Source: Blastocladiella emersonii ATCC 22665 (lineage: Eukaryota > Fungi > Blastocladiomycota). Taken from it: 64,000 nucleotides of DNA. The notes under the pieces are model-generated. The model saw nothing but the letters and a program-made list of their open reading frames with translations, was not told the DNA's origin and did no database searches. Where the stretch lies: positions 992,001-1,056,000 of the forward strand of contig JANHCV010000012.1 in assembly GCA_025594325.1 (NCBI GenBank), given 5' to 3'. This document shows positions 34,433 through 55,882 of the stretch, piece by piece. The first letter of the stretch is position 1. Every line of letters begins with the position of its first letter. The position numbers and the translations under genes are program-made.

Positions 34433-36087
34433 ATGGTCAGTGATGCACTCCTCAATGAATCAACCCCGCCGCCGCCCTGCCGCGCGCGCGCACACCGATG
34501 AACGCTGGTGACTGACGATCCCGCCCGCTCTTTCGAATCCCCCCGCCCGCCGTGTATGAACTGGTGGCCACGCTCACCCATCCGCGCCCCCTCGCTGCTT
34601 CCGCCCCGTGCGCGCGTCTCCAAAAACCATGCCAATGACCCTCCTCACGCTCCGCTGTGTGGTGTGCACCTTCGACGTGCGCTCGCTGATCTGGTCGCTC
34701 TGCGCGATGTGCCTGCCGTGTCCCGCTGTTTGGACGGATGTCGCGTGATTCGCGCTCCTTGTGGCTGTCCTGTCCCTGCAGGCTCCTAAGGGCAAGAAGA
34801 TCGCCGCCGCTCCCTTCAAGGCCGGCGCCAAGGCCGCCGCCGCGACCAAGGACGCTCGCATTGAGAAGACCCCCCGCAACTTCTCGATCGGTACGCCTCC
34901 GTGCATCTCTCTCCCCTTTTTCTTCGTGTCCCGGTGACTCGGGTGCGGGAACTGGGGCGGGGTCGCTGGACGGTCGAAAGTCGATGAGTGCAGCTTTCCG
35001 TCGCGCCATTTCAAGCGGGCGGCCGCTCCGGCGGCTGCTCGTGGCCGACGTAGGCATGGTTTTTGTGATGGCAGGCGGCTCTCGTACCGTCCCTTGCGGG
35101 CGGTGCGTGTACCGTCGCGCCAGTTGACGCCGGGTGGCGAGGTGGCGGCGCTCGAGCCCGTCCTCCGTTTGCGTGCTGCCGCTGCTCGTAAATGATCCGC
35201 GCGCTCGCACCCGCCGGTCGGCCCGTGTGTCCGCCACCTCGTTCCCCGCCATCCGGCGTCGCATCTCGTTTGACCTGCCTTTTGAACTGCTGCACTTTCG
35301 ACTCTCGACTCTGTCCACCACCCCGCCCGGTTCTCGCACTCGCACCGTGTCGCCCTCAACCGCCCGCCCTCCCGAACCGTCGTGCTCACCGCCCGACCCC
35401 CGCTCAGGCAACGACATCCAGCCCAAGCGCGACCTGACCCGCTTCGTCCGCTGGCCCGAGTACGTCCGCCTCCAGCGCCAGCGCGCCATCCTCAAGCGCC
35501 GCCTCAAGGTCCCCCCGGCCATCAACCAGTTCTCGCGCGTCGCCGACAAGAACGTCGCCACCCAGCTGTTCCGCCTCCTGAACAAGATCCGCCCCGAGAC
35601 CAAGCAGGAGAAGAAGGCCCGTCTTTCGGCCGCCGCTGAGGCCAAGGCCGCTGGCAAGACCGTCGAGGCTGGCAAGAAGCCCGTCATCGTCAAGTACGGT
35701 ATCAACCACGTGACGGCCCTCATCGAGGCCAAGAAGGCCAAGCTCGTCGTCATCGCCCACGACGTCGACCCCATCGAGCTCGTCGTCTTCCTCCCGGCCC
35801 TGTGCCGCAAGATGGGCGTGCCCTACGTCATCGTCAAGGGCAAGGCCCGCCTCGGGACGGTCGTCCACAAGAAGACGGCCACCGCCCTCGCCATTGTTGA
35901 CGTCAAGGAGGCCGACAAGAACGAGCTCGCTGCCCTCGTCACGGTCGCCAAGGCCAACTTCAACGACAAGTCGGACGAGATCCGCAAGACCTGGGGCGGC
36001 GGTATCATGGGCAAGAAGTCCAACGACAAGACCCTCAAGCGCGAGAAGGCCCGCGCCAAGGAGGTCTCGACCGCTCACCTCGCCTAA
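34433..36087 (+). CDS. RPL7A: 60S ribosomal protein eL8 (L7a / yeast L8)
   Basis: Exon 1 is the ATG only (34433-35), intron 34436-34781, exon 34782-34890, intron 34891-35407, exon 35408-36087. Contains [23 protein letters not shown] and [25 protein letters not shown]. Confidence 0.95.
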
Positions 36088-36410
36088 GCGTGTGTGCTGC
36101 TGTTGTCGTCGCTCATCGCTTCGCGACCGGGTCCGGGTGTGGTGTGTTCACTCAATACATTGCTCCTTGACTCTCCAAAGCACTCTTGTACAGTTTTCTC
36201 TAGATACACAATGTTTTAGTCCCCACTTTTTCTCGCTGCCTACTTCGCCCCGGTGGCTCGGGCTCACTTCTTTCGTCGGCTTGGCGGCTCGCTTGCACAG
36301 CCGCACAGCTTGCGGGTCGATGCTGAGCTCGGGCCTCGTCCATCTCTTCTCTCTCGCAGGCCACGAACGTCTCCATGTAACTCGACCCTCGGCTCGCCAG
36401 CGTCTCCATC

Positions 36411-37104
36411 ATGTCCAACTTCCACCGCCCACGCATCTGCACGCACACGGCTTCGGCCGCAGCGGCAGCGGCACCGTACCACGCTAACCTGCGTTATGAG
36501 CCCATGGCGGCGTACAAACTGACGCTCGCTCGTTCGCACTTCGAGGCGACAATGGAAGACTACGAGCCGTACCACGCTCGCGCGCACTATGAAAGACTAC
36601 GAGCCGTACTACGCTCGCGCGCACTATGAGCCCGCGATGGCCAACGAGCCGCCCCTCGCTCGCTTGCGCTTCGTGTCCGCGATGGCATACGAGCCGCACC
36701 ACGCTCACACTCACTACGAGCTCACGCTGGCCATCCACCCACACATCGCTCACTCGCACTTTGGGACCTGTCCAGATGCAGCTGCGCTGTTCATGGCCTT
36801 GCAGCACCACTTGCGCACTTGTCGCGGGTGCTACGGCCACGCGGAAATGGTGTTCCGCGGCACTGCGGCCATGGCCATGGCCACGGTCATGAGCGTGCGA
36901 TGGCCGGCGCGGTCCGCGGCAACGCGCGTCCCCGCTGCTCCGCAGCGGAAGAAACAGCAGCAGTGGCGCGAGAAGACTTACGACCCGAACCTGCCGTTCG
37001 CATGCGTACCGCAATGTCCGTTGCGGTCCGCGAGCTGGCGAGGCCTCCGTATTCACCAGGCATCCTGCAAGCGCTCTCGCCTTCACTTTGGCAAGCCGTT
37101 CTGA
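36411..37104 (+). pseudogene. YEP-repeat ORF with C-terminal C2HC zinc finger, frameshifted by a 37-bp tandem duplication
   Basis: The duplicated unit starts at 36556 and 36593. Removing one unit fuses ORFs 36411-36629 and 36589-37104. The C-terminus reads CVPQCPLRSASWRGLRIHQASC. Confidence 0.45.
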
Positions 37105-37360
37105 TCAAATGGGCGGCGCTTCAGCCGTGTTCCTGGGTCAACTGCGTCACGGTGTCGCCATCAAGCGGGTCCTGTGTGATGGATGGTGCGAGTAGACTCT
37201 CTTGACTGGACCGCGCGTAATTCGCCGGTAAGAGTGAGGCAAGAACGCGAAGGCGAGCGTGAGGAAGCGCGTTGCGCCACAGCGTGACGGCCAACGCTGG
37301 CAGGAGGTGAAAGTGTGGCGGCCCGCCGAAACGCTTTCTCGCTCCTCGCCCACGAAGCTC

Positions 37361-38491
37361 ATGGAACCAATGATGGAAACCAGCTCAAACGACTTGATGC
37401 AACCCGTCCCAATCGAGCAGCTCAGCTTGGACGACGAGCCAGCGGCACCGCCGTCGCCGTCGACGCTCGGGCCCGCCCCGATCCGCGAGCGCCCGCTGCG
37501 GCTCCTGGACCTCCCGCAAGATGTTCTCTCTGCGATCTTTCATACTGTCATCGAAACCGCGGGACCCCGGACTTTCACCTCGTTGATGTTCTCCCACTCT
37601 TCACTGTTCCGCTTGGCCCAATTCGACCCGGCCGTGTATTTGCCGCGCTTACATCTTGTCGTCTCGCCGCCTTATGATCGCTTACAAGCATTCAAGAAGC
37701 GCGGAGTGGTATTACCCAACAGCCTTCTATTCCTACTCGTATCATTGCACAGGTCGACCCACCAAGGCGCGTCCGCGCGTTCCTGCCCGCCGATCCAAGT
37801 GCTTCTCACGCTCCTGCCACGCCCTGCTCGTTGCACATGGACGGATGACGACCTCTTACCAATGATGTCTACCTTTCAAACCGCAGCCCAAAATGTCTTC
37901 AAGGTAATTGAGCCAAACCCCGTCACGCTTGATTTCTCACTCCTTGAAAACAGCCTTTTGGTTCGTTTCGTGCTGTTACACCTGCTGGATGGAGACCCCT
38001 TGGAGCCTACTGCTCCGGATCTTCGTATTATTCACCGGGCCCCAGAGTTCTCGAGTGGAAACGGGTTCGACTGGCCTACTGGGCGCAAATACTCGACGCC
38101 GTTTGTAACCGTGTGTTCCAGCTGCGAACAGCGAGCCGTACTTGGTGATCGACCACGCTGGCTGTGCTTGGCCTGTTCCCCTGATGCCCGCCAAAAACTA
38201 CCCGTTGGGGGTAGCGACTCACCTCCTCCGCCGCCAACTCGGACGTGCTGGACTTGCCGCAAGCTCACGACGGACTGTTCACCACTCTCCGACGTCTGCC
38301 AGCGCGAGGGCCATGTCTCGCCCAAATCGTTTCGGGTAGACCTCTGACCCGCTTGCGCACCTCGCATCCATCGAATCGGCTGCGACTGGTGCTTCTACGC
38401 AAACGGCGGCGATCCGGTGTGGCTCCCCCCACTCGATGCTCCCGCTGATCTCGGGTTGACCCCCGGCGAGGTCAATGCTGCTCAAGAATAG
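37361..38491 (+). pseudogene. F-box-like plus CxxC-rich protein, left outer palindrome copy (in-frame TGA at 38345)
   Basis: LRLLDLPQDVLSAIFHTV resembles an F-box. CSSC, CLAC, CWTC, *PAC and CDWC follow. It is colinear, at 376 codons, with the copy at 52424-53554. Confidence 0.7.
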
Positions 38492-39045
38492 CTCAAGAAC
38501 GGCGTGCCGGGTACGAGAGTCGCTGAGGCCTCACGCCAAAATCGACTCGTTCCGTGAAGCTTGATCGACTTCGCAATACATTTTGTTTCTGTGCCGCTCC
38601 CTCTGTGATACGCGCAGCCGATCTACTCACCTGAACTCCGGGTGATGATTCGTCGTCCGTCCGTTGACTTGACGCGTTGCGCCACGCACGTGTGCATGGT
38701 CAACGCGCTCTTCAGCTCGCTTCGGCCGACCCACGGCGGGGCAACCCCAGTCGAAGAACAGCTGTTGTACCAAGAACTAATGCTTGGCTCGGACGTTCCG
38801 TCACGACGTGACGCAACGCGTCCGCATACTTCGCCACCCCCTTGCCACGCGGGAAACAGAACGGGAAAGTAGAAGTTCAGAAGATAGCTCCGCCACGATT
38901 GAATTCTCATCAAACACGCTGTATTGAGCCCTCGAAATACGCTGCGGCTTGACTATCCCCTTAACGTACGACGACCGCTTGAGTGAAAAACGCTGCACTT
39001 TTAATCTCAAGGGGCACTCAGCGAGCAGCTGTAGTGGCATCAACT

Positions 39046-40786
39046 TAATGATCTGCGGCAAGTGAAGCGACGGGCCACATTGAACCCCCGCCGTTCGCGT
39101 AGAAGCACCATTCTCAGCCGATTCGGCGAATTTGAGGAGCGCACGAAGAGCAAAGGTCAACACGGAAGGATGCGGGCGATGTATGACCTTCGCGTTGGCA
39201 AACTTCAGCGAGCGGGACGATGCCCGTGGGCAGCCTGCAGTAGATCCAGCACATCCGTGGTGGGTTGCTGCCATCGTTCGCGCGGCAGACTAACCTTGAT
39301 GTGCTTCGAGCGAGTATGCCAAACAACGCCACAAGTGCTTCTCGCTGCGTTCCCTCTATCGCAACGTGGTGGCAACAGCACGCCCGCTCAGAGGCGGACC
39401 AAGTGTGACTGACTGGCACGCGAAGGCCCCGTTGGCCGCTCCGCTCTTCGGACGGCTACTCGACGTGCCGCTGCGGCTCGACCACGCGAACCACATTCGA
39501 TCGCTCGCTCTCGCAGTCTGGATTTCATGGACATGCCCTGTCAGTTGCTGGACAACTGCGATGGGAAGATTCGCATCAGCTGGCGCGAGTGGCCAGTGCT
39601 CGCCCTCGACTATTATGCGGCGAATCGTCACGCCCTTAAGTGACGAGCAGGGCAAGACGGCGGCGAGGTTCACTGGGCGCGAGGCCGACTCGTCCAACAG
39701 CGGCTCAAAGACACACGATATGTCAAGCCCGCCCGCCCGCGCATCCACGAAGCGGATCAGGTGTCGCAGCACGTCGTACTCGACCAGCGGGGTGTGAGCG
39801 GCGGCAGACGGGTGCTCGCGCGGAGACGAAGACGGAGCCTCGTGCCAGATCCGTCGTCCGTCTCAGCGAGCGCATCGCAGCTGTCGTGTTCGCGAAGTGC
39901 GCGGCGGGCGGGTCAAGTACCGGCCAGAAGAATCAGCGAGAATTCCCAATCCGTGAACTCTTAGAGGACGTCAAAGAGAGCCCACACGCGTGACGCAGTT
40001 GGCTCGGTCACCAAGCGCTTCCCCCTCGTCGTACGTAACACGCCAAAAGATTGGAGAAGCTTAGCGGTCCGCTTCACGTCACGAGCAGACCGTTGGTTTC
40101 TGAACCTCACGGGCTTCGGTTGAAGACGTGTGAGAAGTTCGAGTGGCGCGTCGAGCGAGTGAGGCACACGCAATTCTGGGCGCAAACACCGCTACTAGCA
40201 CCTAGCTGTGCGCTCAACAGCAGCGCGCTCGCAGTTACGTTCAAATGCGCCCATCGGACCCAAGTGAGTTGGAAGCGCAACCAGGCCGTGACCTTGGCGC
40301 GGCCGCGTGCGCGCGCATCCGCGAGTCCGGGAGCAGCATAAACAACGACGCAAACGTGGCCTCGAGGTCGCCGGCGTGCGTACAGGAGAGGAGACGCGGC
40401 AGCGAAACCCGGCGAGCGAGCGGTGCAGCGGGAAGGTGCCCACGGAAAGTTGGATCGCGGCGACAAGGAGATCGGACCAAGTTGCGCCGCGAGCAATCAA
40501 GGGCGGCGCGAAGAGGGAGGGGTACAGACGAGAGCGGCGAGAGCAGCTGACGGATCGAACGCAGGGCGCCCGTGAAGCGTAGATCGATGTACCAGACGAG
40601 GAGCATCTGCAGGTGAGGCACGAGGCTCGTAGCAACAGGTTGCGGCCAACGCCTGGGAGCAGCCGGCGTCGTCGACGGCGAGCGTCCGTCGCAGCAGAGC
40701 GGTCATGCGCGAGGTGCGACGACGCAGCGGAGCGGCAGCTCGAGCGCCGTGTTCATAGGGTGGTATTCATATTGCATAAGCTTCAT
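39046..40786 (-). pseudogene. Decayed distant paralog of the F-box-like/CxxC gene (left inner copy)
   Basis: Mirror of 50132-51872. The C-terminus CWIYCRLPTGIVPLAEVCQREGHTSPASFRVDLCSSCAPQIRRIG*EWCFYANGG aligns with the outer copies. The 5' extent is uncertain. Confidence 0.55.
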
Positions 40787-43014
40787 GGGTAGATTGCAGC
40801 GGCTGGAGGTCCCAATCAGAGCTAGCGTCCCAGTCAGAGCTAGCGAGAGAGAGAGCGCGAGAGTCGCCGAGGGGAGGGCGCGCTGGAGGAACTCGCGCTC
40901 GTGCAACCAACCCCGCGCCCCGGACCACAGAGCGCCCCGTCAGCGCCGTGATGCACTCGCTCGTGTGTGTTGGAGAGCAGCCGCTCGTTGAACAAGGCCG
41001 GTCGTGAACGGGATCGGCACTCGCGAACGCTGCAGGGGGCGTCGCGGGCTTCGCGACGTCACCACCGTGGCGAAGCCATGCGATTGGCCTTGCTGAAAGG
41101 ACGGGCGTGCATCAACATGAGCCCCGGGCTGCCCTACGCGTCCTCAGTTGACCAAGATCGTGGTGATCGAGCCGGTCCCGAGCTTGAGGCGAGGCTCGCG
41201 GCGGAGCTCGAAGGGCGACCGGCTTGGTCGTCAAGAGCACTATCAAGCAGGTCCCGACGAGAGTCCGGCGAGGCCCGTGAGGGAGCTTCACCAAGTCGAG
41301 CAAGACCCGTTGACGGTCAAGGTCCGCAAGCGAGGGTGGTGGAGACGACCGGGACGCGCGATCACGTCGAGGCCGGCGGCCGGGCCAGCCAACGGGGACG
41401 GCTCGTTTGCAAGCCGCCGCGATGTGGCGCATCGCGTGGGCCGGCAACGGCAGGCGGGCCGTGTGCGCGAACACGGCGCGTTCCCATGGGAGCGGAAGCG
41501 CGAATTGCGAGGCGCGCGGCGCGAGGAGGCGTGCGAGGGGCGACTGCGTGGTGGGAACGCGGCCCCCCGAACCCCGAACAACGGCACGGGCAACACACCC
41601 CAAGGCCCGAGCGGTAGCGACCGATGCGGTTTGCGGCGCCGCTCGTCCGTCCACTCTCTCTGTCCTCTGAGGTCCCCGATCCGAGAAGCCATGGAGCAAA
41701 GTGTGAGAGTCGACTCGTGGACGTGCGTGCGCGCTACCCCGACGTCGGAAGCTTCGGCAGACGCGTTGCACGGGATGGGCCGACGATGGAGGAGGAAGGG
41801 CGGATGGATCGAGCGGCTGTGGCATGGAGAAGGAAGATTGGTCGAGAAGCGCCGGACCGGGCAAGGTCAAGTCCCGAGGCCGATCCGCTGTACGCGCGCC
41901 GGGGAGCGGTTTCCTCCGTGTCCGAGGTCGCGTCCTGCAACAAGCGGATTGGGCTTGGATGCCCTTGGGCCAAAGAGCCGGAGGACCTGCTCGAGGTGCC
42001 CCAGCACACGGACGGCCAGCTCCGGAGCGCGGTGAACGGTCGGGTTCGATGCCGAGCGCCTGCCGCGCGAACCGAGGTCGCGTCCAGGTCGGCCGACGTG
42101 GGCGACCCCGGTGCACGCAGTCGCAGGACCAGTAGCGCATACATGATTGCTTCATACGAGACGATTGCAGCGTCGCGCGTGGAGTACGTGTCGTGGGAGG
42201 CAATCTTGAGTGGAACTGGCGGTACGTCCTGCCAAACTTGATGGTGTGACGCGCCAGCCCCGTCCCTGCCGCTACGCCTCGATCGTGGCCGGGTGCCTCG
42301 GCGCGCTACCGCGGGCATGGGCCCGAGAAGGCGTCATGGTCACGGGGGATCAGGCACATGAGAATTGTCTCTCAAGTGGCGCGGCGAGGGCGGCAGCCGG
42401 AGGGAGACGGTGGCGCGACGCGTCGCGGGCAAGCTTGTTCACCGCCGACGCGTCGTGCTCCCGCTCTCTCTCTCCGCGATATTGCAACGCTATCCCGATC
42501 CTCCTCCGATCCGACCTCTCCGACTCTTCGCATCCACAAGGTCCACTACCGGGCAGTACTACCAGACACCGCTCGGCGCGGTGACGGACACGCAGGTACA
42601 TGCGCGGCTGGGTCGTGACGGTCGTGCACTCACGGTACGCGTCCGGATCCGTGTAGATTCGCGTAGCACACGACGCAAGGGCTTCTGCAAGACGATCGGT
42701 GCGCGGTCAAGAGCTACTCGGGCGCATCAAGGTCGAGAGACGCACAAGCGGTGACAACGTCGCGCGTCCAGCTGCTGCTCATCGGGGCTGTAAGCAACGA
42801 CTGCAAGATCGAGGAGATCAACAAGTCCAAGCTCTAGACGCCCGCCCGCCCGCGTTCCCGCGTTCCCGCGCGTCGTCGTCCAGCTGCTGCTCGCCAAGGC
42901 CAAGACCATGACCGAGGAGCTCGAGGAGTTCAAGCTCGTGGTGGTCGTGTCGTTGTCGTGCTGCGCGTGGTCGTGGTCAAGCGCAACGTGTTCCTCCCCG
43001 TTCCTCGCGTCCCT

Positions 43015-43700
43015 CGACTCGACGTGCTCGCGTTCCTCGACTCGACTCGACTCGACTCGAATCGAATCGACGTGTTCCCGTTCCTCGAGTCCCTTGACGT
43101 GCTTCCGTTCCAACAAGATGATCCTCGACTACGGGACTACGACCGGTACTCGCTCGCTCCCGCCTGCCCACCCGCGCCCTTGTCTCTCGACTCTCCGGCG
43201 CGCGTCCATCACCAACCACAGCACGCAGCAGCAGCAGCACATCGACCTCGACTCGACCGACCTCTTCTCCTTCCTCGTCGACCTGACCAGCCAAATGCAG
43301 GTCGCGGGTCGCACACGCGCGCGCGCGTCGGTCGTCGGTCAACTCGGTCGTCGGTCGGGTCGCGCGGGTCGCAGGCCGCCGCCGCATTCGCCATGGAACG
43401 TGTGCGCTCTCGCCTCGCTGCTGCTGCAGCACGTGTCTTCTTCTTCTTCGAGCTCGACGAGTGGTGCTGACCCGAAAACTCCTCCCTACCCCCGCGCCCG
43501 ACGACGTGTACGCTCTCCCTCGCACTACAGCCTGCTCCGCCTGCTCCGCCTGCTCCGCCTGCTACGGTACTCGGGTCCTCGACTCGATCCTCGACGTGTT
43601 CCTGTTCCTCGACGCCTCGACGCCTCGACTCCCCAACGTGTTTCTCGCTCGGCCACGATCCTCGACGCCTCGACGACGTGTTTCTCGCTCGACACCACGA
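43015..43700. repeat. TCGA-rich low-complexity block: (CTCGA)n, 9-bp CCTGCTCCG tandem, ~40-bp tandem unit (mirrored at ~47,220-47,900)
   Basis: Read directly from the sequence. Confidence 0.8.
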
Positions 43701-45413
43701 TGACACGCACGACTGCTCGCTCCCGCGATCGTCCGTCATCTCCCTCATCCACGGGTACGCGTCGCGTCGTGCGTGCTCCGCGCAGTGGGCTCACCACCAC
43801 CCTCACCTCGCGTAGTCCATCCGTTCGTCCCACGGGCGGCTCTTCTCTGTCTTCCATCGGTGCTGTGCCGCGCGTTCTGCCGCGCGTCCGGAGCACTTCC
43901 ACATCACCTCCCTTCACCCTTACGTCCATCCACTTATCACCCCGCCTCACTTCATGCAATGGATCATACCTGTCGCCTGGATGTATTTACCAAGTCACAC
44001 AAGCTGATGCCACGCACGGCTTCGTGCTCCCTTCAAAGGTGCCGTCCATTCCGCGCCGCATTAAGAGCCGGCACCGCTTGAGCTTCCGGAGAGCAGCGAG
44101 TATGACGTGACAGTGAACCGTGAGCATCTTCTCTATACACAGCGTGAGCGATACGTTTGAGCCAAGGAACAGCACGGACACGATGTCAGCTCTGTTGGAC
44201 TTGGGCGTGCGGCAAGACTCCTCCGGGAATGCTTTCACACTAATGCCTGTTCTCCAGTAACTCACAGCAGTTACATGTTCATTATCAAGGACTGTTGCTT
44301 GCGCGTGTCTTTCTTGGCTGTACCCGTGCTTGAAGACGTAGATTACGAGGCGGATGCGCGAGATCATAACCCCCTTGACACGCGTCAGGACCTTGAGGCA
44401 GGGCGGTCGCCAGGGTCACTGACTGTTGCAAGCGAGATCACAGGCAGCTTGCCTCGATCGGTCGAGTCCTTGCGCGTTTTGCAGACAGTGCAGTCTAAAC
44501 GTGAATTTCGGGGGGGGGGGGGTGCTCAGAGTCGCGAGGCATGATTGAGGGCGCGGGCGCGTACCACCACCGCTCAAAGCGATTCTCGTACTGCGACCCG
44601 ATGCGGCGTCTGCGCTTGGCGGACATGATTTCACCGTTAGCCTCGTCATTGTCACCCAGTCCTATACAGCCGGCACGTCAAAAGTCAACCGGCTCGGGCG
44701 TCACGCAATCGTTGGCTTTGGAAACTGCGATCAGCTTGCTTAGCAACGTATTAACGCCGTCGCGGGGATTGTTCATAGTATCCTGGAGGCCACGCTACCC
44801 GCAAGCGAATTCTGAAATGGCCGACATTCAGCATATCTTGCCGGTTTGCTCCAATGCGCCTCTCACGCCTGAGATGAAAATTGCTCAACTTTACCGCGAC
44901 ATGATTCTTGCCGCTCTCCTGTGGCCCAATGAATAGTTTCCGTACTACACTAACATCATCATTGACGTGGACCAGATCAACGCGAGGCGTGATGCTGGGA
45001 ATGGATTTGAGCGACATGTTCATCAATAACACCGACTGAGGTGAGCGAGTGTGCGGCCAGCTCACACGATCGAGAGTACGCGGCTCGCCCTCGCGACGCG
45101 CCACTCATGTGCTGTGGCGCAATCTGAAACGCGGTCCGATCACTGACTTGATCATTGTCGTGTAGCGCGCTTTGAGTCGGTCGGCGTGTTCCGAAACCCG
45201 AATGACAAGGACTAGGTCGTCGCGCAGTACCTACAATTATACTTGATCCACCTAGACGCTTCGCGTTTGGTTTTCAATCGAGGGCTAAAGCATGCGCCAC
45301 GTTGGGCGCTTGTGCCGTGCAGGCGCGCTTCCGCTCGAGCCGTGAGTAGGCGCCCGTTGAACGAGTCTTTTACATCACTCATACTGCAGTACTCGACGGA
45401 GGGTTCGGAGATC

Positions 45414-45523
45414 GGCGCGTCGCAGCACGGCGCGTCGCAGCACAACGGTCGCAGCTCAACGCGTCGCATCACAGCGCGCCGCAGCACAGACCGCCGCAGC
45501 ACAGCGCGCCGCAGCACGGCGCG
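45414..45523. repeat. Degenerate 15-bp tandem array (consensus RGCGCGYCGCAGCAC) x ~7
   Basis: Units start at 45414, 45429, 45444, 45458, 45473, 45488 and 45503. Confidence 0.85.
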
Positions 45524-45559
45524 ATGCGCGCGCATCAATGGAGGCCGGTGCGGCTAGTC

Positions 45560-46345
45560 GCTCGCGTTGGGTGACGACAATTGTAGTGCCTTGCAAGGCA
45601 CCGACAAGAGTCACCGGCGCGACATCAACAATTGCGTTGCAGCGCGGGCACCAAGCACGCTCTCGCACGGCGCTCGAGGAGATGGCCGTCGCAGCGCAGG
45701 GCGCGGCTCCAGGAGCCTGCAAAGGTGGCTGTACATCCGCTTCAACCATGCAGCGAGCGGCGCATCCACGACGGAGGCCACGATGTGCTTGATACGGTTT
45801 GAGCCGCTGAGCTGCTCTGTGAGCGAGCGAGCTGGACATGCCAGCGCGGAGGCTGACGCCGATCTCGTCTGGCGACTACGGTCAGAACTGGTGCCAGTGG
45901 GCGCGGGTCGGTAGCTGGCCGGCGAGCAAGGGAAGCTGGAAGCTCATGAGCGACAGAGAGTGCGCCTCGGGTCTGTGTTGAATTCGCAGCCGCGCCGAGA
46001 CACCGTTTAGGGCGTGCCCTGGTCCGCGCGGATGGCGGCCGCGACTCCCAGCGGTAAGTGCGCGGCGGCGCCCTGAATGGCGAGCGCGTCGGCCTCCTTT
46101 TTGGCCGAGTTCGCAGCGTGGCCGCGAACCCACTCGAAGCTGACCTGGAGCTCGCGAGCCGCGATGATCCAGCAGAGCACGGCCCACTCGAGCGAACATA
46201 TTGCGCGGACCCACACCCTTGGAGAAGGCAAGAGCATCTTGACGGCCGAGTCGACAACTCTCTTGTTGTCGAGCGTGAGGGTGCGCTTGACACCGCGGCG
46301 ATACGCCGCATCGGGTCGCAGTACGAGAATCGCTTTGAGCGGTGG
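45560..46345 (-). mobile_element. Retroelement relic: RNase H C-terminal half and a downstream CPRC motif
   Basis: LKAILVL...TLTLDNKRVVD...LQVSFEWVRGHAANSAKKEADALAIQG matches the RNase H WVxGH...EEADxLA signature. WCPRC lies downstream. No RT domain was seen. Confidence 0.65.
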
Positions 46346-49300
46346 TGGTACGCGCCCGCGCCCTCAATCATGCCTCGCGACTCTGAGCACCCCCCCCCCC
46401 CCCCCCCCGAAATTCACGTTTAGACTGCACTGTCTGCAAAACGCGCAAGGACTCGACCGATCGAGGCAAGCTGCCTGTGATCTCGCTTGCAACAGTCAGT
46501 GACCCTGGCGACCGCCCTGCCTCAAGGTCCTGACGCGTGTCAAGGGGGTTATGATCTCGCGCATCCGCCTCGTAATCTACGTCTTCAAGCACGGGTACAG
46601 CCAAGAAAGACACGCGCAAGCAACAGTCCTTGATAATGAACATGTAACTGCTGTGAGTTACTGGAGAACAGGCATTAGTGTGAAAGCATTCCCGGAGGAG
46701 TCTTGCCGCACGCCCAAGTCCAACAGAGCTGACATCGTGTCCGTGCTGTTCCTTGGCTCAAACGTATCGCTCACGCTGTGTATAGAGAAGATGCTCACGG
46801 TTCACTGTCACGTCATACTCGCTGCTCTCCGGAAGCTCAAGCGGTGCCGGCTCTTAATGCGGCGCGGAATGGACGGCACCTTTGAAGGGAGCACGAAGCC
46901 GTGCGTGGCATCAGCTTGTGTGACTTGGTAAATACATCCAGGCGACAGGTATGATCCATTGCATGAAGTGAGGCGGGGTGATAAGTGGATGGACGTAAGG
47001 GTGAAGGGAGGTGATGTGGAAGTGCTCCGGACGCGCGGCAGAACGCGCGGCACAGCACCGATGGAAGACAGAGAAGAGCCGCCCGTGGGACGAACGGATG
47101 GACTACGCGAGGTGAGGGTGGTGGTGAGCCCACTGCGCGGAGCACGCACGACGCGACGCGTACCCGTGGATGAGGGAGATGACGGACGATCGCGGGAGCG
47201 AGCAGTCGTGCGTGTCATCGTGGTGTCGAGCGAGAAACACGTCGTCGAGGCGTCGAGGATCGTGGCCGAGCGAGAAACACGTTGGGGAGTCGAGGCGTCG
47301 AGGCGTCGAGGAACAGGAACACGTCGAGGATCGAGTCGAGGACCCGAGTACCGTAGCAGGCGGAGCAGGCGGAGCAGGCGGAGCAGGCTGTAGTGCGAGG
47401 GAGAGCGTACACGTCGTCGGGCGCGGGGGTAGGGAGGAGTTTTCGGGTCAGCACCACTCGTCGAGCTCGAAGAAGAAGAAGACACGTGCTGCAGCAGCAG
47501 CGAGGCGAGAGCGCACACGTTCCATGGCGAATGCGGCGGCGGCCTGCGACCCGCGCGACCCGACCGACGACCGAGTTGACCGACGACCGACGCGCGCGCG
47601 CGTGTGCGACCCGCGACCTGCATTTGGCTGGTCAGGTCGACGAGGAAGGAGAAGAGGTCGGTCGAGTCGAGGTCGATGTGCTGCTGCTGCTGCGTGCTGT
47701 GGTTGGTGATGGACGCGCGCCGGAGAGTCGAGAGACAAGGGCGCGGGTGGGCAGGCGGGAGCGAGCGAGTACCGGTCGTAGTCCCGTAGTCGAGGATCAT
47801 CTTGTTGGAACGGAAGCACGTCAAGGGACTCGAGGAACGGGAACACGTCGATTCGATTCGAGTCGAGTCGAGTCGAGTCGAGGAACGCGAGCACGTCGAG
47901 TCGAGGGACGCGAGGAACGGGGAGGAACACGTTGCGCTTGACCACGACCACGCGCAGCACGACAACGACACGACCACCACGAGCTTGAACTCCTCGAGCT
48001 CCTCGGTCATGGTCTTGGCCTTGGCGAGCAGCAGCTGGACGACGACGCGCGGGAACGCGGGAACGCGGGCGGGCGGGCGTCTAGAGCTTGGACTTGTTGA
48101 TCTCCTCGATCTTGCAGTCGTTGCTTACAGCCCCGATGAGCAGCAGCTGGACGCGCGACGTTGTCACCGCTTGTGCGTCTCTCGACCTTGATGCGCCCGA
48201 GTAGCTCTTGACCGCGCACCGATCGTCTTGCAGAAGCCCTTGCGTCGTGTGCTACGCGAATCTACACGGATCCGGACGCGTACCGTGAGTGCACGACCGT
48301 CACGACCCAGCCGCGCATGTACCTGCGTGTCCGTCACCGCGCCGAGCGGTGTCTGGTAGTACTGCCCGGTAGTGGACCTTGTGGATGCGAAGAGTCGGAG
48401 AGGTCGGATCGGAGGAGGATCGGGATAGCGTTGCAATATCGCGGAGAGAGAGAGCGGGAGCACGACGCGTCGGCGGTGAACAAGCTTGCCCGCGACGCGT
48501 CGCGCCACCGTCTCCCTCCGGCTGCCGCCCTCGCCGCGCCACTTGAGAGACAATTCTCATGTGCCTGATCCCCCGTGACCATGACGCCTTCTCGGGCCCA
48601 TGCCCGCGGTAGCGCGCCGAGGCACCCGGCCACGATCGAGGCGTAGCGGCAGGGACGGGGCTGGCGCGTCACACCATCAAGTTTGGCAGGACGTACCGCC
48701 AGTTCCACTCAAGATTGCCTCCCACGACACGTACTCCACGCGCGACGCTGCAATCGTCTCGTATGAAGCAATCATGTATGCGCTACTGGTCCTGCGACTG
48801 CGTGCACCGGGGTCGCCCACGTCGGCCGACCTGGACGCGACCTCGGTTCGCGCGGCAGGCGCTCGGCATCGAACCCGACCGTTCACCGCGCTCCGGAGCT
48901 GGCCGTCCGTGTGCTGGGGCACCTCGAGCAGGTCCTCCGGCTCTTTGGCCCAAGGGCATCCAAGCCCAATCCGCTTGTTGCAGGACGCGACCTCGGACAC
49001 GGAGGAAACCGCTCCCCGGCGCGCGTACAGCGGATCGGCCTCGGGACTTGACCTTGCCCGGTCCGGCGCTTCTCGACCAATCTTCCTTCTCCATGCCACA
49101 GCCGCTCGATCCATCCGCCCTTCCTCCTCCATCGTCGGCCCATCCCGTGCAACGCGTCTGCCGAAGCTTCCGACGTCGGGGTAGCGCGCACGCACGTCCA
49201 CGAGTCGACTCTCACACTTTGCTCCATGGCTTCTCGGATCGGGGACCTCAGAGGACAGAGAGAGTGGACGGACGAGCGGCGCCGCAAACCGCATCGGTCG

Positions 49301-51881
49301 CTACCGCTCGGGCCTTGGGGTGTGTTGCCCGTGCCGTTGTTCGGGGTTCGGGGGGCCGCGTTCCCACCACGCAGTCGCCCCTCGCACGCCTCCTCGCGCC
49401 GCGCGCCTCGCAATTCGCGCTTCCGCTCCCATGGGAACGCGCCGTGTTCGCGCACACGGCCCGCCTGCCGTTGCCGGCCCACGCGATGCGCCACATCGCG
49501 GCGGCTTGCAAACGAGCCGTCCCCGTTGGCTGGCCCGGCCGCCGGCCTCGACGTGATCGCGCGTCCCGGTCGTCTCCACCACCCTCGCTTGCGGACCTTG
49601 ACCGTCAACGGGTCTTGCTCGACTTGGTGAAGCTCCCTCACGGGCCTCGCCGGACTCTCGTCGGGACCTGCTTGATAGTGCTCTTGACGACCAAGCCGGT
49701 CGCCCTTCGAGCTCCGCCGCGAGCCTCGCCTCAAGCTCGGGACCGGCTCGATCACCACGATCTTGGTCAACTGAGGACGCGTAGGGCAGCCCGGGGCTCA
49801 TGTTGATGCACGCCCGTCCTTTCAGCAAGGCCAATCGCATGGCTTCGCCACGGTGGTGACGTCGCGAAGCCCGCGACGCCCCCTGCAGCGTTCGCGAGTG
49901 CCGATCCCGTTCACGACCGGCCTTGTTCAACGAGCGGCTGCTCTCCAACACACACGAGCGAGTGCATCACGGCGCTGACGGGGCGCTCTGTGGTCCGGGG
50001 CGCGGGGTTGGTTGCACGAGCGCGAGTTCCTCCAGCGCGCCCTCCCCTCGGCGACTCTCGCGCTCTCTCTCTCGCTAGCTCTGACTGGGACGCTAGCTCT
50101 GATTGGGACCTCCAGCCGCTGCAATCTACCCATGAAGCTTATGCAATATGAATACCACCCTATGAACACGGCGCTCGAGCTGCCGCTCCGCTGCGTCGTC
50201 GCACCTCGCGCATGACCGCTCTGCTGCGACGGACGCTCGCCGTCGACGACGCCGGCTGCTCCCAGGCGTTGGCCGCAACCTGTTGCTACGAGCCTCGTGC
50301 CTCACCTGCAGATGCTCCTCGTCTGGTACATCGATCTACGCTTCACGGGCGCCCTGCGTTCGATCCGTCAGCTGCTCTCGCCGCTCTCGTCTGTACCCCT
50401 CCCTCTTCGCGCCGCCCTTGATTGCTCGCGGCGCAACTTGGTCCGATCTCCTTGTCGCCGCGATCCAACTTTCCGTGGGCACCTTCCCGCTGCACCGCTC
50501 GCTCGCCGGGTTTCGCTGCCGCGTCTCCTCTCCTGTACGCACGCCGGCGACCTCGAGGCCACGTTTGCGTCGTTGTTTATGCTGCTCCCGGACTCGCGGA
50601 TGCGCGCGCACGCGGCCGCGCCAAGGTCACGGCCTGGTTGCGCTTCCAACTCACTTGGGTCCGATGGGCGCATTTGAACGTAACTGCGAGCGCGCTGCTG
50701 TTGAGCGCACAGCTAGGTGCTAGTAGCGGTGTTTGCGCCCAGAATTGCGTGTGCCTCACTCGCTCGACGCGCCACTCGAACTTCTCACACGTCTTCAACC
50801 GAAGCCCGTGAGGTTCAGAAACCAACGGTCTGCTCGTGACGTGAAGCGGACCGCTAAGCTTCTCCAATCTTTTGGCGTGTTACGTACGACGAGGGGGAAG
50901 CGCTTGGTGACCGAGCCAACTGCGTCACGCGTGTGGGCTCTCTTTGACGTCCTCTAAGAGTTCACGGATTGGGAATTCTCGCTGATTCTTCTGGCCGGTA
51001 CTTGACCCGCCCGCCGCGCACTTCGCGAACACGACAGCTGCGATGCGCTCGCTGAGACGGACGACGGATCTGGCACGAGGCTCCGTCTTCGTCTCCGCGC
51101 GAGCACCCGTCTGCCGCCGCTCACACCCCGCTGGTCGAGTACGACGTGCTGCGACACCTGATCCGCTTCGTGGATGCGCGGGCGGGCGGGCTTGACATAT
51201 CGTGTGTCTTTGAGCCGCTGTTGGACGAGTCGGCCTCGCGCCCAGTGAACCTCGCCGCCGTCTTGCCCTGCTCGTCACTTAAGGGCGTGACGATTCGCCG
51301 CATAATAGTCGAGGGCGAGCACTGGCCACTCGCGCCAGCTGATGCGAATCTTCCCATCGCAGTTGTCCAGCAACTGACAGGGCATGTCCATGAAATCCAG
51401 ACTGCGAGAGCGAGCGATCGAATGTGGTTCGCGTGGTCGAGCCGCAGCGGCACGTCGAGTAGCCGTCCGAAGAGCGGAGCGGCCAACGGGGCCTTCGCGT
51501 GCCAGTCAGTCACACTTGGTCCGCCTCTGAGCGGGCGTGCTGTTGCCACCACGTTGCGATAGAGGGAACGCAGCGAGAAGCACTTGTGGCGTTGTTTGGC
51601 ATACTCGCTCGAAGCACATCAAGGTTAGTCTGCCGCGCGAACGATGGCAGCAACCCACCACGGATGTGCTGGATCTACTGCAGGCTGCCCACGGGCATCG
51701 TCCCGCTCGCTGAAGTTTGCCAACGCGAAGGTCATACATCGCCCGCATCCTTCCGTGTTGACCTTTGCTCTTCGTGCGCTCCTCAAATTCGCCGAATCGG
51801 CTGAGAATGGTGCTTCTACGCGAACGGCGGGGGTTCAATGTGGCCCGTCGCTTCACTTGCCGCAGATCATTAAGTTGATGC
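46303..51881 (-). repeat. Right inner arm of the large inverted repeat (5,579 bp)
   Basis: Reverse complement of 39037-44609. The spacer is 44610-46302 (1,693 bp). Confidence 0.95.
50132..51872 (+). pseudogene. Decayed distant paralog of the F-box-like/CxxC gene (right inner copy)
   Basis: Start MKLMQYEYHPMNTALELPL (tentative), several frame breaks, CxxC-rich end with TGA at 51802-51804 replacing a Cys. Confidence 0.55.
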
Positions 51882-52423
51882 GACTACATGTGCGCGCCGA
51901 GTACTGCCCAGGATAAACGCGTAGTTTTTCTCGCTCGGGCAGGCGCCGCGACTCGAGGCTGATCGGCGAGCCTCAGCGTATTTCGATTGTCTCAATACAG
52001 AGTGACTGATGAGAATCTGATCGCGGCGGATCTCTCTCCTCTGAACTTGGACACGCTCGCGTCTTGTCATCCACGCTGCAAGGGGGTGGAATAGCCTGTG
52101 GACGGGTTGTGTCACGTTGTGATGAAACGTGCGAGCTCGACATCATTTCTATTAATGACAGTTGCGCCGCGACTTGGGATGCATAGCTGGAGGTCGGGCT
52201 AGGCGAGATGAAAAGCGCGCTGACCATGCGCGCGTGAGTGGCGCAACGCGTCGATCGAATCAGGGAACGAAAAAACTTTGCCCAGCACTTGCGATTGTGA
52301 ATCAGCTGTGTGTATTGGGGTAGTGGAACAAGAGAGGTACATCACGACATTAATCAAGCTGTACAGAACGAGTCGGTTTCGACCTGAAGCCTCAGCGACT
52401 ACCGCGCCCGGCACCTCGTTGAG

Positions 52424-53554
52424 CTATTCTTGAGCAGCATTGACCTCGCCGGGGGTCAACTCAATATCAGCGGGAGCATCGAGTGGGGGGAGCCACACCG
52501 GATCGCCGCCGTTTGCGTAAAAGCACCAGTCGCAGCCGATCCGCCGAATCCGCGGCGCGCAAGCGGGGCAAAGGTCAACTTCAAACGACTCGGGCGAGCA
52601 GTGTCCTTCGCTTGGGCAAACCTCGGCGAGCGGCAAACAGTCCGTGGTGAGCTTGCGGCAGACCCAACACGTCTCATGTTCCGGTTGAGGCGGGTTGTCA
52701 TCATCACCGACGGATTGATCTTGATGAGAGTCGGGCGAGCAGGCCGGACAAAACCAGGTGGGTCTATCACCAAGGACGGCCCGCTGGTTGGAAGCGGAAC
52801 ACACGGTGACCAACTGCTTCGAGAGCCCAGGGCCAAGCGGCCAGGCAAAATCGGTTCCACTCGCGTAATCAGGAGCTCGGTGAATGATGCGAATGTCTAG
52901 ACCAGCAGATGTGGCGAAAGTAGCTCGATTCGCAAGATGGAAGACGAGAAAACCGATCAGACTCGCATGTTCAAGAAGTGAGCAGTCAAGCGAGACAGGG
53001 ATTGGTTTGATTATCGCATAGACCATAGCCGCAGCATGTTGGTAAACCTGAAGTGCTTGGCTGACCTCCGGCTTCCGGCTTTGAGCAGGGTGCGCCAGCA
53101 GCGTGAGATGGACTTGAATCGGCGGGTAAGACTGGTCTGGCGGTCCGAGTTTGTACAGCCCGACCATGCATGCAAGAACAATGAGAAGACTCCGGGGCAG
53201 TCGTGTCACACGCTTTGGCGCCGGTGTAGGCGGCTCGTAGGGCGGCGATATGACAAGATGGATGTGCGGCGAGTATACAGCCGGGTCGGTTTTGATCAAG
53301 TTGAGCAACGACGTGTGGCAGTAAGCCAACGATACGAAGGTTCGCGTCCCGGAGTACTCAAGGACAGCGTGAAGAATCGCCGCAAGAACGATTTGCGGAA
53401 GGTCCAAGAGCTGAAGCGAGCGCTCGTGGATCGGGGCGGTCGTGAGCGCCGATGGCGGCGGCGGCGGTGCCGCTGGCTCATCGTCCAGTCTGAGCTGCTC
53501 GATTGGGACGGGTTGCATCAAGTCGTGTGAGTCAGTTTCCATGATTGAATCCAT
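52424..53554 (-). CDS. F-box-like plus CxxC-rich protein, right outer palindrome copy (intact, 376 aa)
   Basis: LQLLDLPQIVLAAILHAV, then CPAC, CWVC, CPAC and CDWC. The frame is open. Confidence 0.72.
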   Translation of the reverse strand: MDSIMETDSHDLMQPVPIEQLRLDDEPAAPPPPPSALTTAPIHERSLQLLDLPQIVLAAILHAVLEYSGTRTFVSLAYCHTSLLNLIKTDPAVYSPHIHLVISPPYEPPTPAPKRVTRLPRSLLIVLACMVGLYKLGPPDQSYPPIQVHLTLLAHPAQSRKPEVSQALQVYQHAAAMVYAIIKPIPVSLDCSLLEHASLIGFLVFHLANRATFATSAGLDIRIIHRAPDYASGTDFAWPLGPGLSKQLVTVCSASNQRAVLGDRPTWFCPACSPDSHQDQSVGDDDNPPQPEHETCWVCRKLTTDCLPLAEVCPSEGHCSPESFEVDLCPACAPRIRRIGCDWCFYANGGDPVWLPPLDAPADIELTPGEVNAAQE

Positions 53555-54707
53555 GAGCTTCGTCTGTGCGCAGTGGGAACACGTTGCGACCGTCTCAGCA
53601 GTTTTTGCCGCGCGGCTGCAGCCATCACGCTGTGGCGCAACGCGCTTCGCCTCACTCGTCGAGACGCACTTGATGGGCCATGTTGGCGACCATCGAATTC
53701 TCGTGAAATCAACTGCCCGACTTGACTGCGCGGGGGAAGTCAGCATTCCCGCTCCACCAGCGTCCAGCCTGCTTCACCTCACTGATTACAACTTCGAACG
53801 AACGGCCAACTCGCATAGCCATTCGAAATCTCCGCCATCAGTCGCAATCAAGGTCCTGATGGCACGCAAGCGACTCGTCGAACTCGCCCAGCTCGCTGCT
53901 TTATCCGCGAGTGTGGCGAAGACGTCTTTCTTGGGGCAGCGGCAGTTCGCGGGCACGATGTGCGCTCAAACCGCTGAATCTCACCATTCATTCACATCAC
54001 GCCAACTCAAGGTTTCCTCTCCTGTGCGGCCGGAACGATCCCTCTGCAAATTCGACGAGACGAGCTTATCCAACGTGGATACGGCGAGACCTCTAGTCCT
54101 GATCTCGACGTTTGCGCGAGGACCGTCACGGGGTGCGGTCACCCGCCCATAACGCACGGCGAAAAGGACGACAGAACGTGACGGCTACGTCAAGCAGGCT
54201 GGACGCGCAGGGGATCGGCCAAAGTAGCAACACAGGCTCTCGCGAGCTCAGAGTTCGAGAAAATGTCCTCCACCTTAGTGGTCCGACCGCCGTGAAGCTC
54301 GATCTTCGGGCTGAGGGCGGGCAGACCTGAGGGCAGGGTGTCGTTATGCAAGACACTTCCCACGAGCGAAATCCGATTATCCCAGTAAATGGGAAACATC
54401 AAGCCCCGTTGGATAGATTTAGAGTGTCCCGCGCTTGGTCAGGCTGTGGGTGAGGGACTCAGCTGAAGCTTTATGCTTTCGGTAGCGCGCGGCGGCGGGG
54501 CGCGAGCGGGCGGGCGGTGGCCGCGGTGTGGCGGAGCGGTGCGTCGAGGTCAGGTGACGGCGTGCTGCCCCGTTGCCGCCGATTTGCGCCACACGGTCCC
54601 ACGCGCGCTTCACACGCGCTCCCTCTCCTCTCCCCTCCCCTGCTTCCCGGACACGAATCAATCCATGCATCAGACCACGTAACGCTAACCGCAAAAATAC
54701 AACAACC

Positions 54708-55882
54708 ATGTCCGGTCTCGGCTCCGAGCTCGGGTCGCTGGGCCAGCTGCTGCTGTGGTTCGTGGTGCCCAACTTCGTGACGTCGCGGGTGCTGGCGTGG
54801 TACCACTCGCGGCTCGCCGCGCCGCCCGCCGAGGGCACCCCGCAGTACGCCAAGCACCGCAACCGCGCCTACGCGCTCGTCATCCTCGCCTACCTCGCCT
54901 ACTCGGTCCACGGCGCCGTCTCCGAGCTGCCGCCCAACGCCTACGCCGTGCTGGGCGTCACGCCGCAGTCGGGCCCCGCCGCCGTGCGCTCGCAGTTCCG
55001 CGCCCTGTCGCTCGTCTACCACCCCGACAAGAACACGGCGCTCGACCCGGACACGGCTGCCCGCGCCTTCATGCGCATCCAGGACGCGCGCGCCGCGATC
55101 GGCGGCGGGCCCGAGCTCCGCCGCATCCACGACCTGCTCGGCCCCGACATGGCCCGCGCGTGTGCGGGCGGCGAGGGAGCCGCCGGGATCAAGCGCGAGT
55201 GCGAGCAGTACGCGGGCGTCGTCGGCGCGTACCTCGCGCGACACCTCGCGCCGACGTACATTGGATACGCTGGGATTATTGGGTTTCTCACCCTGTTCCG
55301 CGCTGTCTCGGCCGGGACCTACTGGTACTACTGATCTTCGTGCGGCGACCGAAGGGGGTCACGGTGCACTGACGCGACATTCACCGTAGGCGCTTCACGA
55401 CGATCCTCGCCATGTTCACCGCCGAAATCGCCGTCGCATCCGGCCGGACACCCGTCGCGCTCGCGTCGCTCCTCGAATCCATCTCGTGGACCCCGCACGA
55501 CCTCGTCCTGCTCGCGCGCGCCCTGTTCCCGATCGTGCTGCTCGCGCTCAACCAGCTCGCCCCCGTGTTCGCCGCACCCGATGAGGCCGACGCCGACGCA
55601 CAGCTCGCGGGCGCCGTGGCCGCCGCGCGCCAGCTCGCGGGCATCACCCACGCGCAGCTGCAGAACGGCCTGCGCCGTCTCATGGAGCCCCTGAGCTCGG
55701 CGGCTGGTAAGGACGCGCGGAACGTCATCCCGCAGGTCGTGCGCCGCATGGAGCTCGAGGCCATCGAGCAGTTTGCGGCGCAGGACCCGGAGTACCGCGC
55801 CGTGTGTGAGCGCGTCCGCGCGGATAAGGCGGGCGTGGCGGCGGTGGTGGGAACGGAGAAAGCGGCGTCGCGGCAGAGGTGA
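54708..55882 (+). CDS. Membrane-associated J-domain (DnaJ/Hsp40-family) protein
   Basis: Contains NAYAVLGV...FRALSLVYHPDKN (HPD motif) with flanking TM segments. Intron 55325-55389 joins the two ORFs in frame. Confidence 0.85.

Follow-up and report, generated by a model that had tools for sequence, protein, structure and literature searches.

The 64,000-nt stretch of the Blastocladiella emersonii ATCC 22665 genome analyzed here (contig JANHCV010000012.1; referred to as the window, C4:992001-1056000) contains a 16.4-kb palindrome, which carries four copies of a gene family with an F-box-like N-terminus and a cysteine-rich C-terminal tail. Taken as a whole, our observations are best explained by a family of this genome that encodes putative substrate receptors for ubiquitin ligases of the SCF type (Skp1, cullin, and F-box protein), a reading that we consider probable, with the palindrome being one of many. 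The genome searched comprises 32.65 Mb in 21 contigs (C1, C2 and so on denote contigs of the same genome, and positions without a prefix are those of the window), and its assembly was built from PacBio HiFi reads (PMC9730499). All family genes were taken as single exons, and broken copies were either aligned with their stop codon written as X or searched piecewise. The family profile was built from 11 members, and the structure models rest on 9–11 paralogues.

The four copies in the window are the following:

52424-53554, minus strand: copy B, the right outer gene, an intact single-exon frame of 376 codons, open upstream to 53746
37361-38491, plus strand: copy A, the left outer gene, colinear with copy B, 376 codons, 59% amino acid identity, with an in-frame TGA
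~39033-39449, minus strand: left inner relic, tail only (profile positions 227-366), with a TGA and a TAA
~51469-51885, plus strand: right inner relic, the mirror of the left relic, inside the identical arms

As the first-pass annotation had described, these copies form two convergent pairs, A(+)/relic(-) and relic(+)/B(-), all in one palindrome. Its account of an identical and decayed inner pair also holds: the two relics, interrupted by TGA and TAA codons, do not differ from each other, as they sit inside arms that are 100% identical. For the outer pair, the LLDLP N-terminus and the CDWCFYANGG end were correctly recognized in both copies (LLDLPQ.VL.AI(L/F)H near residue 48 and GCDWCFYANGG as the ending), but copy A is not open. 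Its fourth CxxC pair has lost the first Cys, a residue kept in all other members, to a TGA at 38345-38347. The frame of copy A continues without a frameshift to the same stop as in copy B, and since no frameshift followed, the TGA must be recent.

Copy B is laid out as an acidic leader (residues 1-45), an F-box-like module (46-96), an alpha/beta middle domain (97-245) and the Cys-rich tail (246-350). As seen in the sequence, the acidic N-terminus has no hydrophobic leader, and a reading as a secreted effector was set aside. The architecture found in the window is not a product of chance: the genome has it at 22 loci, matched at E-values between 1e-157 and 1e-4.

The size of the family was determined by searching the genome in six frames with a single protein, which gave 25 matches, and with the 11-member profile, which gave 29 matches at 22 loci. 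Intact full-length open frames are present at 7 of the 22 loci (C4:1044430 in the window and C2:254513, 256066, 260089, 261321, 314039, and 315757), and the frame at C2:236983 is open without the leader. Stops, frameshifts or fragments are found at the remaining loci. The copies are located in a cluster on C2 (233-321 kb), at four places on C16 (1.91-2.12 Mb), in the window, and at two pairs of loci that are duplicated between contigs (C6:782269/C20:770562 and C6:794098/C20:787872). The C6 and C20 loci are identical and in opposite orientation, with a spacing of 12 kb versus 17 kb; they reflect a segmental duplication or else a haplotig that was not purged. The C2 cluster also contains a tandem array of ~1.1 kb (C2:248603-249686) with a period of ~108 nt and direct self-matches of 91-96%.

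Full-length members have ~335-395 residues, and apart from the window pair the paralogues share 26-48% protein identity. At the DNA level only the tail-coding part is conserved between paralogues (query positions 58-240). The flanks of paralogues share only an element of ~35 nt, located 50-100 nt upstream of the start codon and 81-91% identical. It was found at four loci (37259-37291 and 53602-53655 in the window, and upstream of C16:1913814 and C16:2046444), and in the window the outer edge of the palindrome coincides with it. The element may be a promoter or 5′ untranslated region motif.

A word-index search of 5.8 billion proteins with the 376-aa protein gave no match. The HMMER profile search of 1.84 billion protein representatives gave a single match, whose first 305 residues equal the frame at C2:254513. 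This public protein is a 307-aa model that leaves the genomic frame inside the zinc tail (...LAFSTG). As the model leaves an open frame there, the public annotation probably treats some of the tail as intron and lacks the other members. Within the public data, the family therefore appears confined to this genome, in agreement with the earlier proposal of an unrecognized, lineage-specific family: the only protein matched among the 1.84 billion representatives is the genome's own. Because the Blastocladiomycota are thinly sampled, "species-specific" may mean "clade-specific".

The family is under purifying selection. Between copies A and B the ratio of nonsynonymous to synonymous divergence (dN/dS) is 0.38 for the whole gene; taken by parts, it is 0.32 for the F-box part, 0.40 for the middle domain and 0.22 for the tail. 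Synonymous divergence (dS) is ~1 through most of the gene and lower at both ends, at 0.14 for the first 45 codons and 0.26 for the final 48, where the patch of low divergence extends beyond the stop codon. This mosaic fits an old partial conversion between the arms, as judged from the sequences of the two copies.

The N-terminal module of the family follows the pattern LLDLPQDVLAAILHAVLE..G...F..L..AH.SL.R.A.SDPAVY. Its invariant residues are L12, P13, I20, G29, F33, and L43 (numbering of the N-terminal alignment A2); LP and I-L among them correspond to the best-conserved positions of F-boxes. The Trp usual in helix 3 of the F-box is a Leu in the family; Leu also occurs at this position in some Pfam-positive F-boxes of this genome. 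In the AlphaFold2 (AF2) model, built on the paralogue alignment, the module consists of helices at residues 54-68, 70-77, and 81-89, and the predicted local distance difference test score (pLDDT) reaches 86-94 over residues 50-100. The model was compared with 48,161 representative chains by VIA-align, a method independent of Foldseek. The top 50 matches hold six F-box proteins (rmsd, root-mean-square deviation):

cyclin F, 9cb3_A: Z 5.7, rmsd 1.7 Å over 48 residues, 27% identity
Cdc4, 1nex_B: 2.1 Å over 47 residues
beta-TrCP1, 6ttu_T: 1.8 Å over 44 residues
FBH1, 9xzj_F: 1.8 Å over 41 residues
FBXO31, 5vzt_B: 2.0 Å over 48 residues
FBXL17, 6w66_B: Z 5.5 over 147 residues, rmsd 6.2 Å

All of these except FBXL17 match model residues 44-97 only, and the matched ranges of the chains are what we take to be the annotated F-boxes of the six proteins. 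Any other small helical domain was placed on residues 44-97 just once, in a poor match at 6.5 Å (Vps16, 4kmo_B). The Z scores are convincing only because six independent F-boxes match the same 50 residues.

Comparisons at the sequence level point in the same direction. A hidden Markov model (HMM) of 12 Pfam-positive F-boxes from the same genome scored all ten family N-termini at 4.3-19.4 bits, and the real score was reached by 16 of 2000 composition-matched shuffles. The best alignment runs end to end, from HMM position 3 to 46; four residues are inserted behind helix 1, which probably explains why Pfam misses the module. Aligned by hhalign with the F-boxes of the same genome, the family has its LP placed on theirs (P = 0.0014, probability only 17.6%). 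As a lead, the ESM Atlas ranks F-box clusters first to eleventh among named clusters for residues 40-250 (0.87-0.89), and for the whole protein the best cluster carrying a Pfam domain is an F-box cluster as well (0.90). Genes of the Skp1 family are present in the genome, at C1:792512 and C15:2012609. On these grounds we consider it likely that residues ~44-97 adopt an F-box fold.

Between the F-box-like module and the tail lies a middle domain of ~150 residues, in which a strand-helix unit is predicted to occur four or five times (strands at 97-102, 147-152, 187-190, and 221-225; pLDDT 55-88). It weakly resembles the leucine-rich repeat (LRR) part of FBXL17 (6.2 Å), and TIM-barrel enzymes match it equally well. 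The first-pass annotation had proposed that the proteins use zinc fingers rather than LRR or WD40 domains to bind substrates. This was overstated, as ~150 residues of alternating strand and helix precede the tail; with an alpha/beta domain of this size in between, the zinc tail adds to a repeat-like domain instead of replacing it.

The tail of ~105 residues contains 12 conserved ligands, arranged as five CxxC pairs and one C-x4-H, in the pattern C-x2-C-x13-C-x2-C ... C-x2-C-x13-C-x4-H-x10-C-x2-C-x8-C-x2-C. In the numbering of the tail alignment, C7, C24, C27, C51, C54, C68, H73, C87, C96, C99, W22, W52, W98, and Y101 are invariant, and C10 and C84 are nearly so. Twelve ligands would be enough for three zinc ions, and it is from this pattern that we infer zinc binding. 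Modeled alone, the tail reached a pLDDT of 68. Foldseek comparison with known folds gave only E ≥ 1, so that no known domain was assigned, and the VIA-align matches (Z ≤ 2.9) were spread over zf-HIT, RING, MYND, ZZ, FYVE, C1, AN1, and ribosomal zinc ribbons. Zinc-finger matches in a Pfam search of the 11 members were scattered, confined to single members and at E ≥ 0.03. Searches of the PDB sequences with the full-length and tail profiles yielded nothing useful except a weak alignment to a PHD finger (1wev, E 0.022, with the tail profile) that is driven by the CxxC spacing; the family has no PHD middle His/Cys pair. The tail is thus best described as a putative zinc-finger-like domain that matches no known zinc finger or transposon protein.

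Several results weigh against the F-box and SCF interpretation. Neither PF00646 nor PF12937 matches any of the 11 members at E ≤ 10, and genome scans with these profiles at the same cut-off report 72 and 52 places, respectively, none of which is a family locus. Among the PDB sequences, no F-box protein is recovered with the N-terminal family profile, and Foldseek comparison of the whole model with the PDB returns nothing but TIM-barrel-like noise. The AF2 model, based on just 11 paralogues, has a mean pLDDT of 64.7, and its structural Z scores of 4.5-5.8 are within the range reached by unrelated matches. In copy B the first CxxC pair reads CSAS (52790-52801, minus strand; residues 252-255), which leaves four pairs and not five. 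Finally, with most copies dead, the family may be in decay and no longer used. The F-box proposed in the first-pass annotation accordingly fails the profile test, but the predicted fold, the own-genome HMM, hhalign, and the ESM Atlas agree on it.

The profile results could also be read as those of an orphan zinc-binding family that is not an F-box family at all. The LP-helix would then be due to chance or to a convergent three-helix bundle, and the proteins would act through the Cys-rich tail, perhaps by binding nucleic acids or proteins, and have no link to SCF. Besides the missing Pfam match and the PDB search in which the N-terminal profile finds no F-box, this explanation draws on the hhalign probability of 17.6%, on structural Z scores below 6, and on the tail being the best-conserved part (dN/dS 0.22). 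Against it stand the solved F-boxes that recur on residues 44-97 at an rmsd of ≤ 2.1 Å (FBXL17 excepted), the invariant L, P, I, and L at the most conserved positions of F-boxes, the end-to-end alignment with the own-genome F-box HMM, and Atlas neighbors that are F-box clusters. We regard the orphan family as unlikely, though it is the alternative to be taken most seriously. From the F-box-like module we infer Skp1 binding and a role as SCF substrate receptor, and for this function the balance tips somewhat in favor, less so than for the fold itself.

The defects of individual copies raise the question whether the family is decaying. In the first pair, both Cys are kept in 8 of the 9 other aligned copies, including copy A (C2:254513 is gapped there). 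As copy B reads CSAS, its first zinc site would have three ligands. The five CxxC pairs reported previously are therefore a property of the family tail, but not of the window copies: copy B keeps four, and copy A has the TGA in the fourth. Neither window copy keeps all 12 ligands. A family without present function, in which all copies are pseudogenes or becoming so and constraint reflects past function, would be in line with most loci being broken, with both window copies being defective in one of 12 ligands, and with just one member being present in the protein collection. Seven full-length frames of 335-395 codons persist in a genome of 60-65% GC, however, with invariant Cys, His, and Trp, and dN/dS is well below 1. 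We therefore hold complete decay to be improbable.

The in-frame stops of the broken copies are mostly TGA. Two TGA sites are at Cys codons of CxxC pairs, one in copy A and one in the left relic (39117-39119, minus strand; the first Cys of the last CxxC, and the same in the mirror relic). In the C6/C20 copy (C20:770562) the TGA is at the Trp of CWTC, and in C16:2122955 it is at a non-conserved position. A reading as selenocysteine was rejected: the best match to tRNA-Sec in the genome, 72 nt long, scored 41.5 bits, below the cut-off of 47 bits, no selenocysteine insertion sequence (SECIS) was found at E ≤ 1 in the region searched (36000-55000), and the other TGA codons are at Trp and non-Cys positions. 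As the selenocysteine reading fails, the TGA codons are taken as nonsense mutations.

A single blastn alignment joins 37259-44609 to 53655-46303 and defines a palindrome arm of 7.35 kb. The parts of the palindrome are as follows:

37259-39015: left diverged outer arm, with gene A, ~100 nt upstream and 520 nt downstream of it
39016-44609: left identical inner arm, 5.6 kb, with 0 substitutions and one 6-bp indel near 44522
44610-46302: asymmetric spacer, 1.7 kb, mostly a dispersed repeat
46303-51902: right identical inner arm, the mirror of 39016-44609
51903-53655: right diverged outer arm, with gene B and its flanks

The outer arms of 1.75 kb are 65-70% identical and in the same register, with patches of 95% identity at 37394-37453 and 38348-38527. 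At 39016 the identity jumps sharply from 65-70% to 100%. In the spacer, 45235-46302 is a dispersed repeat found at 93 other places of the genome with 66-93% identity, and a weak, sub-threshold RNase H relic was detected at 46007-46237 (minus strand, E 5e-4). The repeat is probably a decayed retroelement at the center of the palindrome, as judged from its sequence. A Pfam search of the longest open reading frames of the identical arms and the spacer gave nothing else than this sub-threshold relic. An assembly artefact was judged unlikely, given the asymmetric 1.7-kb spacer, the 6-bp indel, the flanks that have diverged in register, and the HiFi assembly.

With a retroelement relic in the spacer, 15 of 22 loci not intact at full length, and copies clustered amid dispersed repeats and inverted duplications, the family could also be imagined as a mobile-element gene. 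Transposition would have multiplied its copies and so account for the clusters, the many dead copies, the nearby repeats, and the inverted duplications. No member, however, has a Pfam transposase, integrase or CxC-type transposon domain in the search of the 11 members, and the same search also covered the possibility, considered in the first pass, that the tail maps to a known transposon protein; no such match was found. Single copies are not framed by terminal repeats, paralogue flanks share nothing but the ~35-nt upstream element, and the identity of 26-48% between paralogues indicates old divergence under constraint and not a recent burst. With neither the domains nor shared termini, the transposon reading was rejected, and we assign it only a very small chance.

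Segments of the palindrome recur elsewhere in the genome. The arm segment 40264-42853 is 80% identical to both arms of an inverted pair in C4 (1236082-1238651, plus strand, and 1246782-1249351, minus strand), and has weaker matches to the inverted pairs C2:629224-633025/640226-644027 and C3:977521/1005681. The same non-coding-looking segment is thus seen in several palindromes, each time as an inverted pair. Family members outside the window also sit in inverted repeats, a point that had been raised for checking: the main cluster on C2 is bracketed by 6-kb arms (C2:230696-236721 and 317573-323596) that are 99.6% identical and 81 kb apart. Each of these arms carries a dead family copy; two further copies that are live and diverged, C2:236983 and C2:315757, are found a short way inward of the arm edges. 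At the two loci examined, an edge of the identical arms comes close to where a family gene or relic has its 3′ end (39016 vs 39033 in the window, and 236721 vs 236983 on C2), with distances of 17 nt and ~260 nt, respectively, although two cases prove nothing.

Inverted pairs of this kind are not limited to the family. Inverted pairs with identical scores were counted 5 times among 72 ordinary F-box matches and once among 129 kinase matches, 9-110 kb apart:

C11:2281710/2392841, C1:4192590/4201692, C19:1573831/1603294, C17:1606957/1616571, C11:421214/467914, and C16:548357/577148: identical inverted F-box or kinase pairs

Palindromes of this kind are common in the genome and not tied to the family. 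Large inverted duplications occur throughout the genome and appear to favor accessory genes. The first-pass annotation had assigned the palindrome a function in maintaining or diversifying the copies. This is not what we find: the family genes other than relics lie in the diverged outer arms, where one of the two is broken, the identical part holds dead relics, and identical inverted duplications are common elsewhere in the genome. A role of the palindrome for the family is not supported, because the identical tract is without a recognizable gene and palindromes are frequent elsewhere.

The genes flanking the palindrome are ordinary genes. A gene for ribosomal protein eL8/L7a (35134-36087; Pfam Ribosomal_L7Ae, E 2e-24) adjoins the region on one side, and a J-domain-like open reading frame (54573-55334), read from its translation, lies on the other. 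The GC content of the window is 58-74%.

These observations suggest the following course of events. An old inverted duplication of a block consisting of gene, relic, and downstream DNA would have formed the palindrome. The inner 5.6 kb would later, and recently, have been re-copied from arm to arm, presumably by conversion, up to the limits at 39016 and 51902, with the genes outside the re-copied tract left to diverge. The encoded protein would be a substrate receptor of an SCF ubiquitin ligase, in which the F-box-like module docks on Skp1 and the middle domain and zinc tail hold the substrate, and the family would evolve by birth and death (7 of 22 loci intact). In a bolder version, the tail would have a novel fold with three zinc ions, the family would have radiated in this species only, as SCF receptors tracking rapidly changing targets (mobile-element or viral proteins, for instance), and inverted duplications would start or stop at the homology offered by the conserved tail-coding DNA of tail-to-tail pairs. 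We consider this combination improbable.

New in this work are a probable F-box too divergent for Pfam, an unassigned middle domain, and a putative three-zinc tail without relatives, all confined to one sparsely sampled fungal lineage. Large, lineage-restricted F-box families with fast turnover are already known, and no long-standing question is opened by adding another. If the F-box reading is true, an early-branching fungus builds new ubiquitin-ligase receptors from a worn but recognizable F-box and a zinc domain that has no known relatives, and multiplies and loses the receptor gene quickly. The tail would then add a new zinc-binding domain to the catalogue, and the family illustrates the limit of Pfam-only annotation for divergent F-boxes. 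Among the palindromes with identical inner arms in this genome, the one described here is a further case, internally dated by dS (~1 vs 0); the set merits one joint study over many single ones.

Large chromosomal palindromes on primate sex chromosomes are kept identical by arm-to-arm gene conversion. The palindrome in the window resembles them in its identical arms, sharp edge, unique spacer, and flanks that have diverged in register. It differs in that the live family genes are outside the identical tract, that the tract has no recognizable gene, and that conversion is deduced from the pattern of identity.

The combination of an F-box with Cys-rich zinc modules in one chain has counterparts in animals. 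Emi1/FBXO5 and Emi2/FBXO43 are animal F-box proteins with a C-terminal zinc-binding region, and KDM2/FBXL19 proteins have CXXC and PHD zinc fingers together with an F-box. In light of these proteins, "F-box plus zinc finger" is not new as an idea. The fungal family is unrelated to the animal ones: its tail has no sequence or fold match to IBR, CXXC or PHD, and its ligand spacing is different.

The middle domain invites comparison with the FBXL proteins. The F-box-like module and the strand-helix repeats of the family model align with FBXL17 (6w66) over 147 residues with a Z score of 5.5, but there is no LRR profile match, the repeats of the model are irregular and ~45-50 residues long, and the rmsd is 6.2 Å.

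In plants, nematodes, and some fungi, F-box genes commonly form multi-copy families with fast turnover. The F-box proteins of the FBXO class come closest to the family described here. The family differs from them in falling below every Pfam threshold, in the 4-residue insertion, and in the replacement of the helix-3 Trp by Leu. It shares with them an N-terminal module of ~50 residues with L-P, (I/L)L..I(L/F), and a helix 3 ending in D..(V/L)(Y/W), a C-terminal domain of a different kind behind this module, and, in the model, three helices that superpose on those of solved F-boxes.

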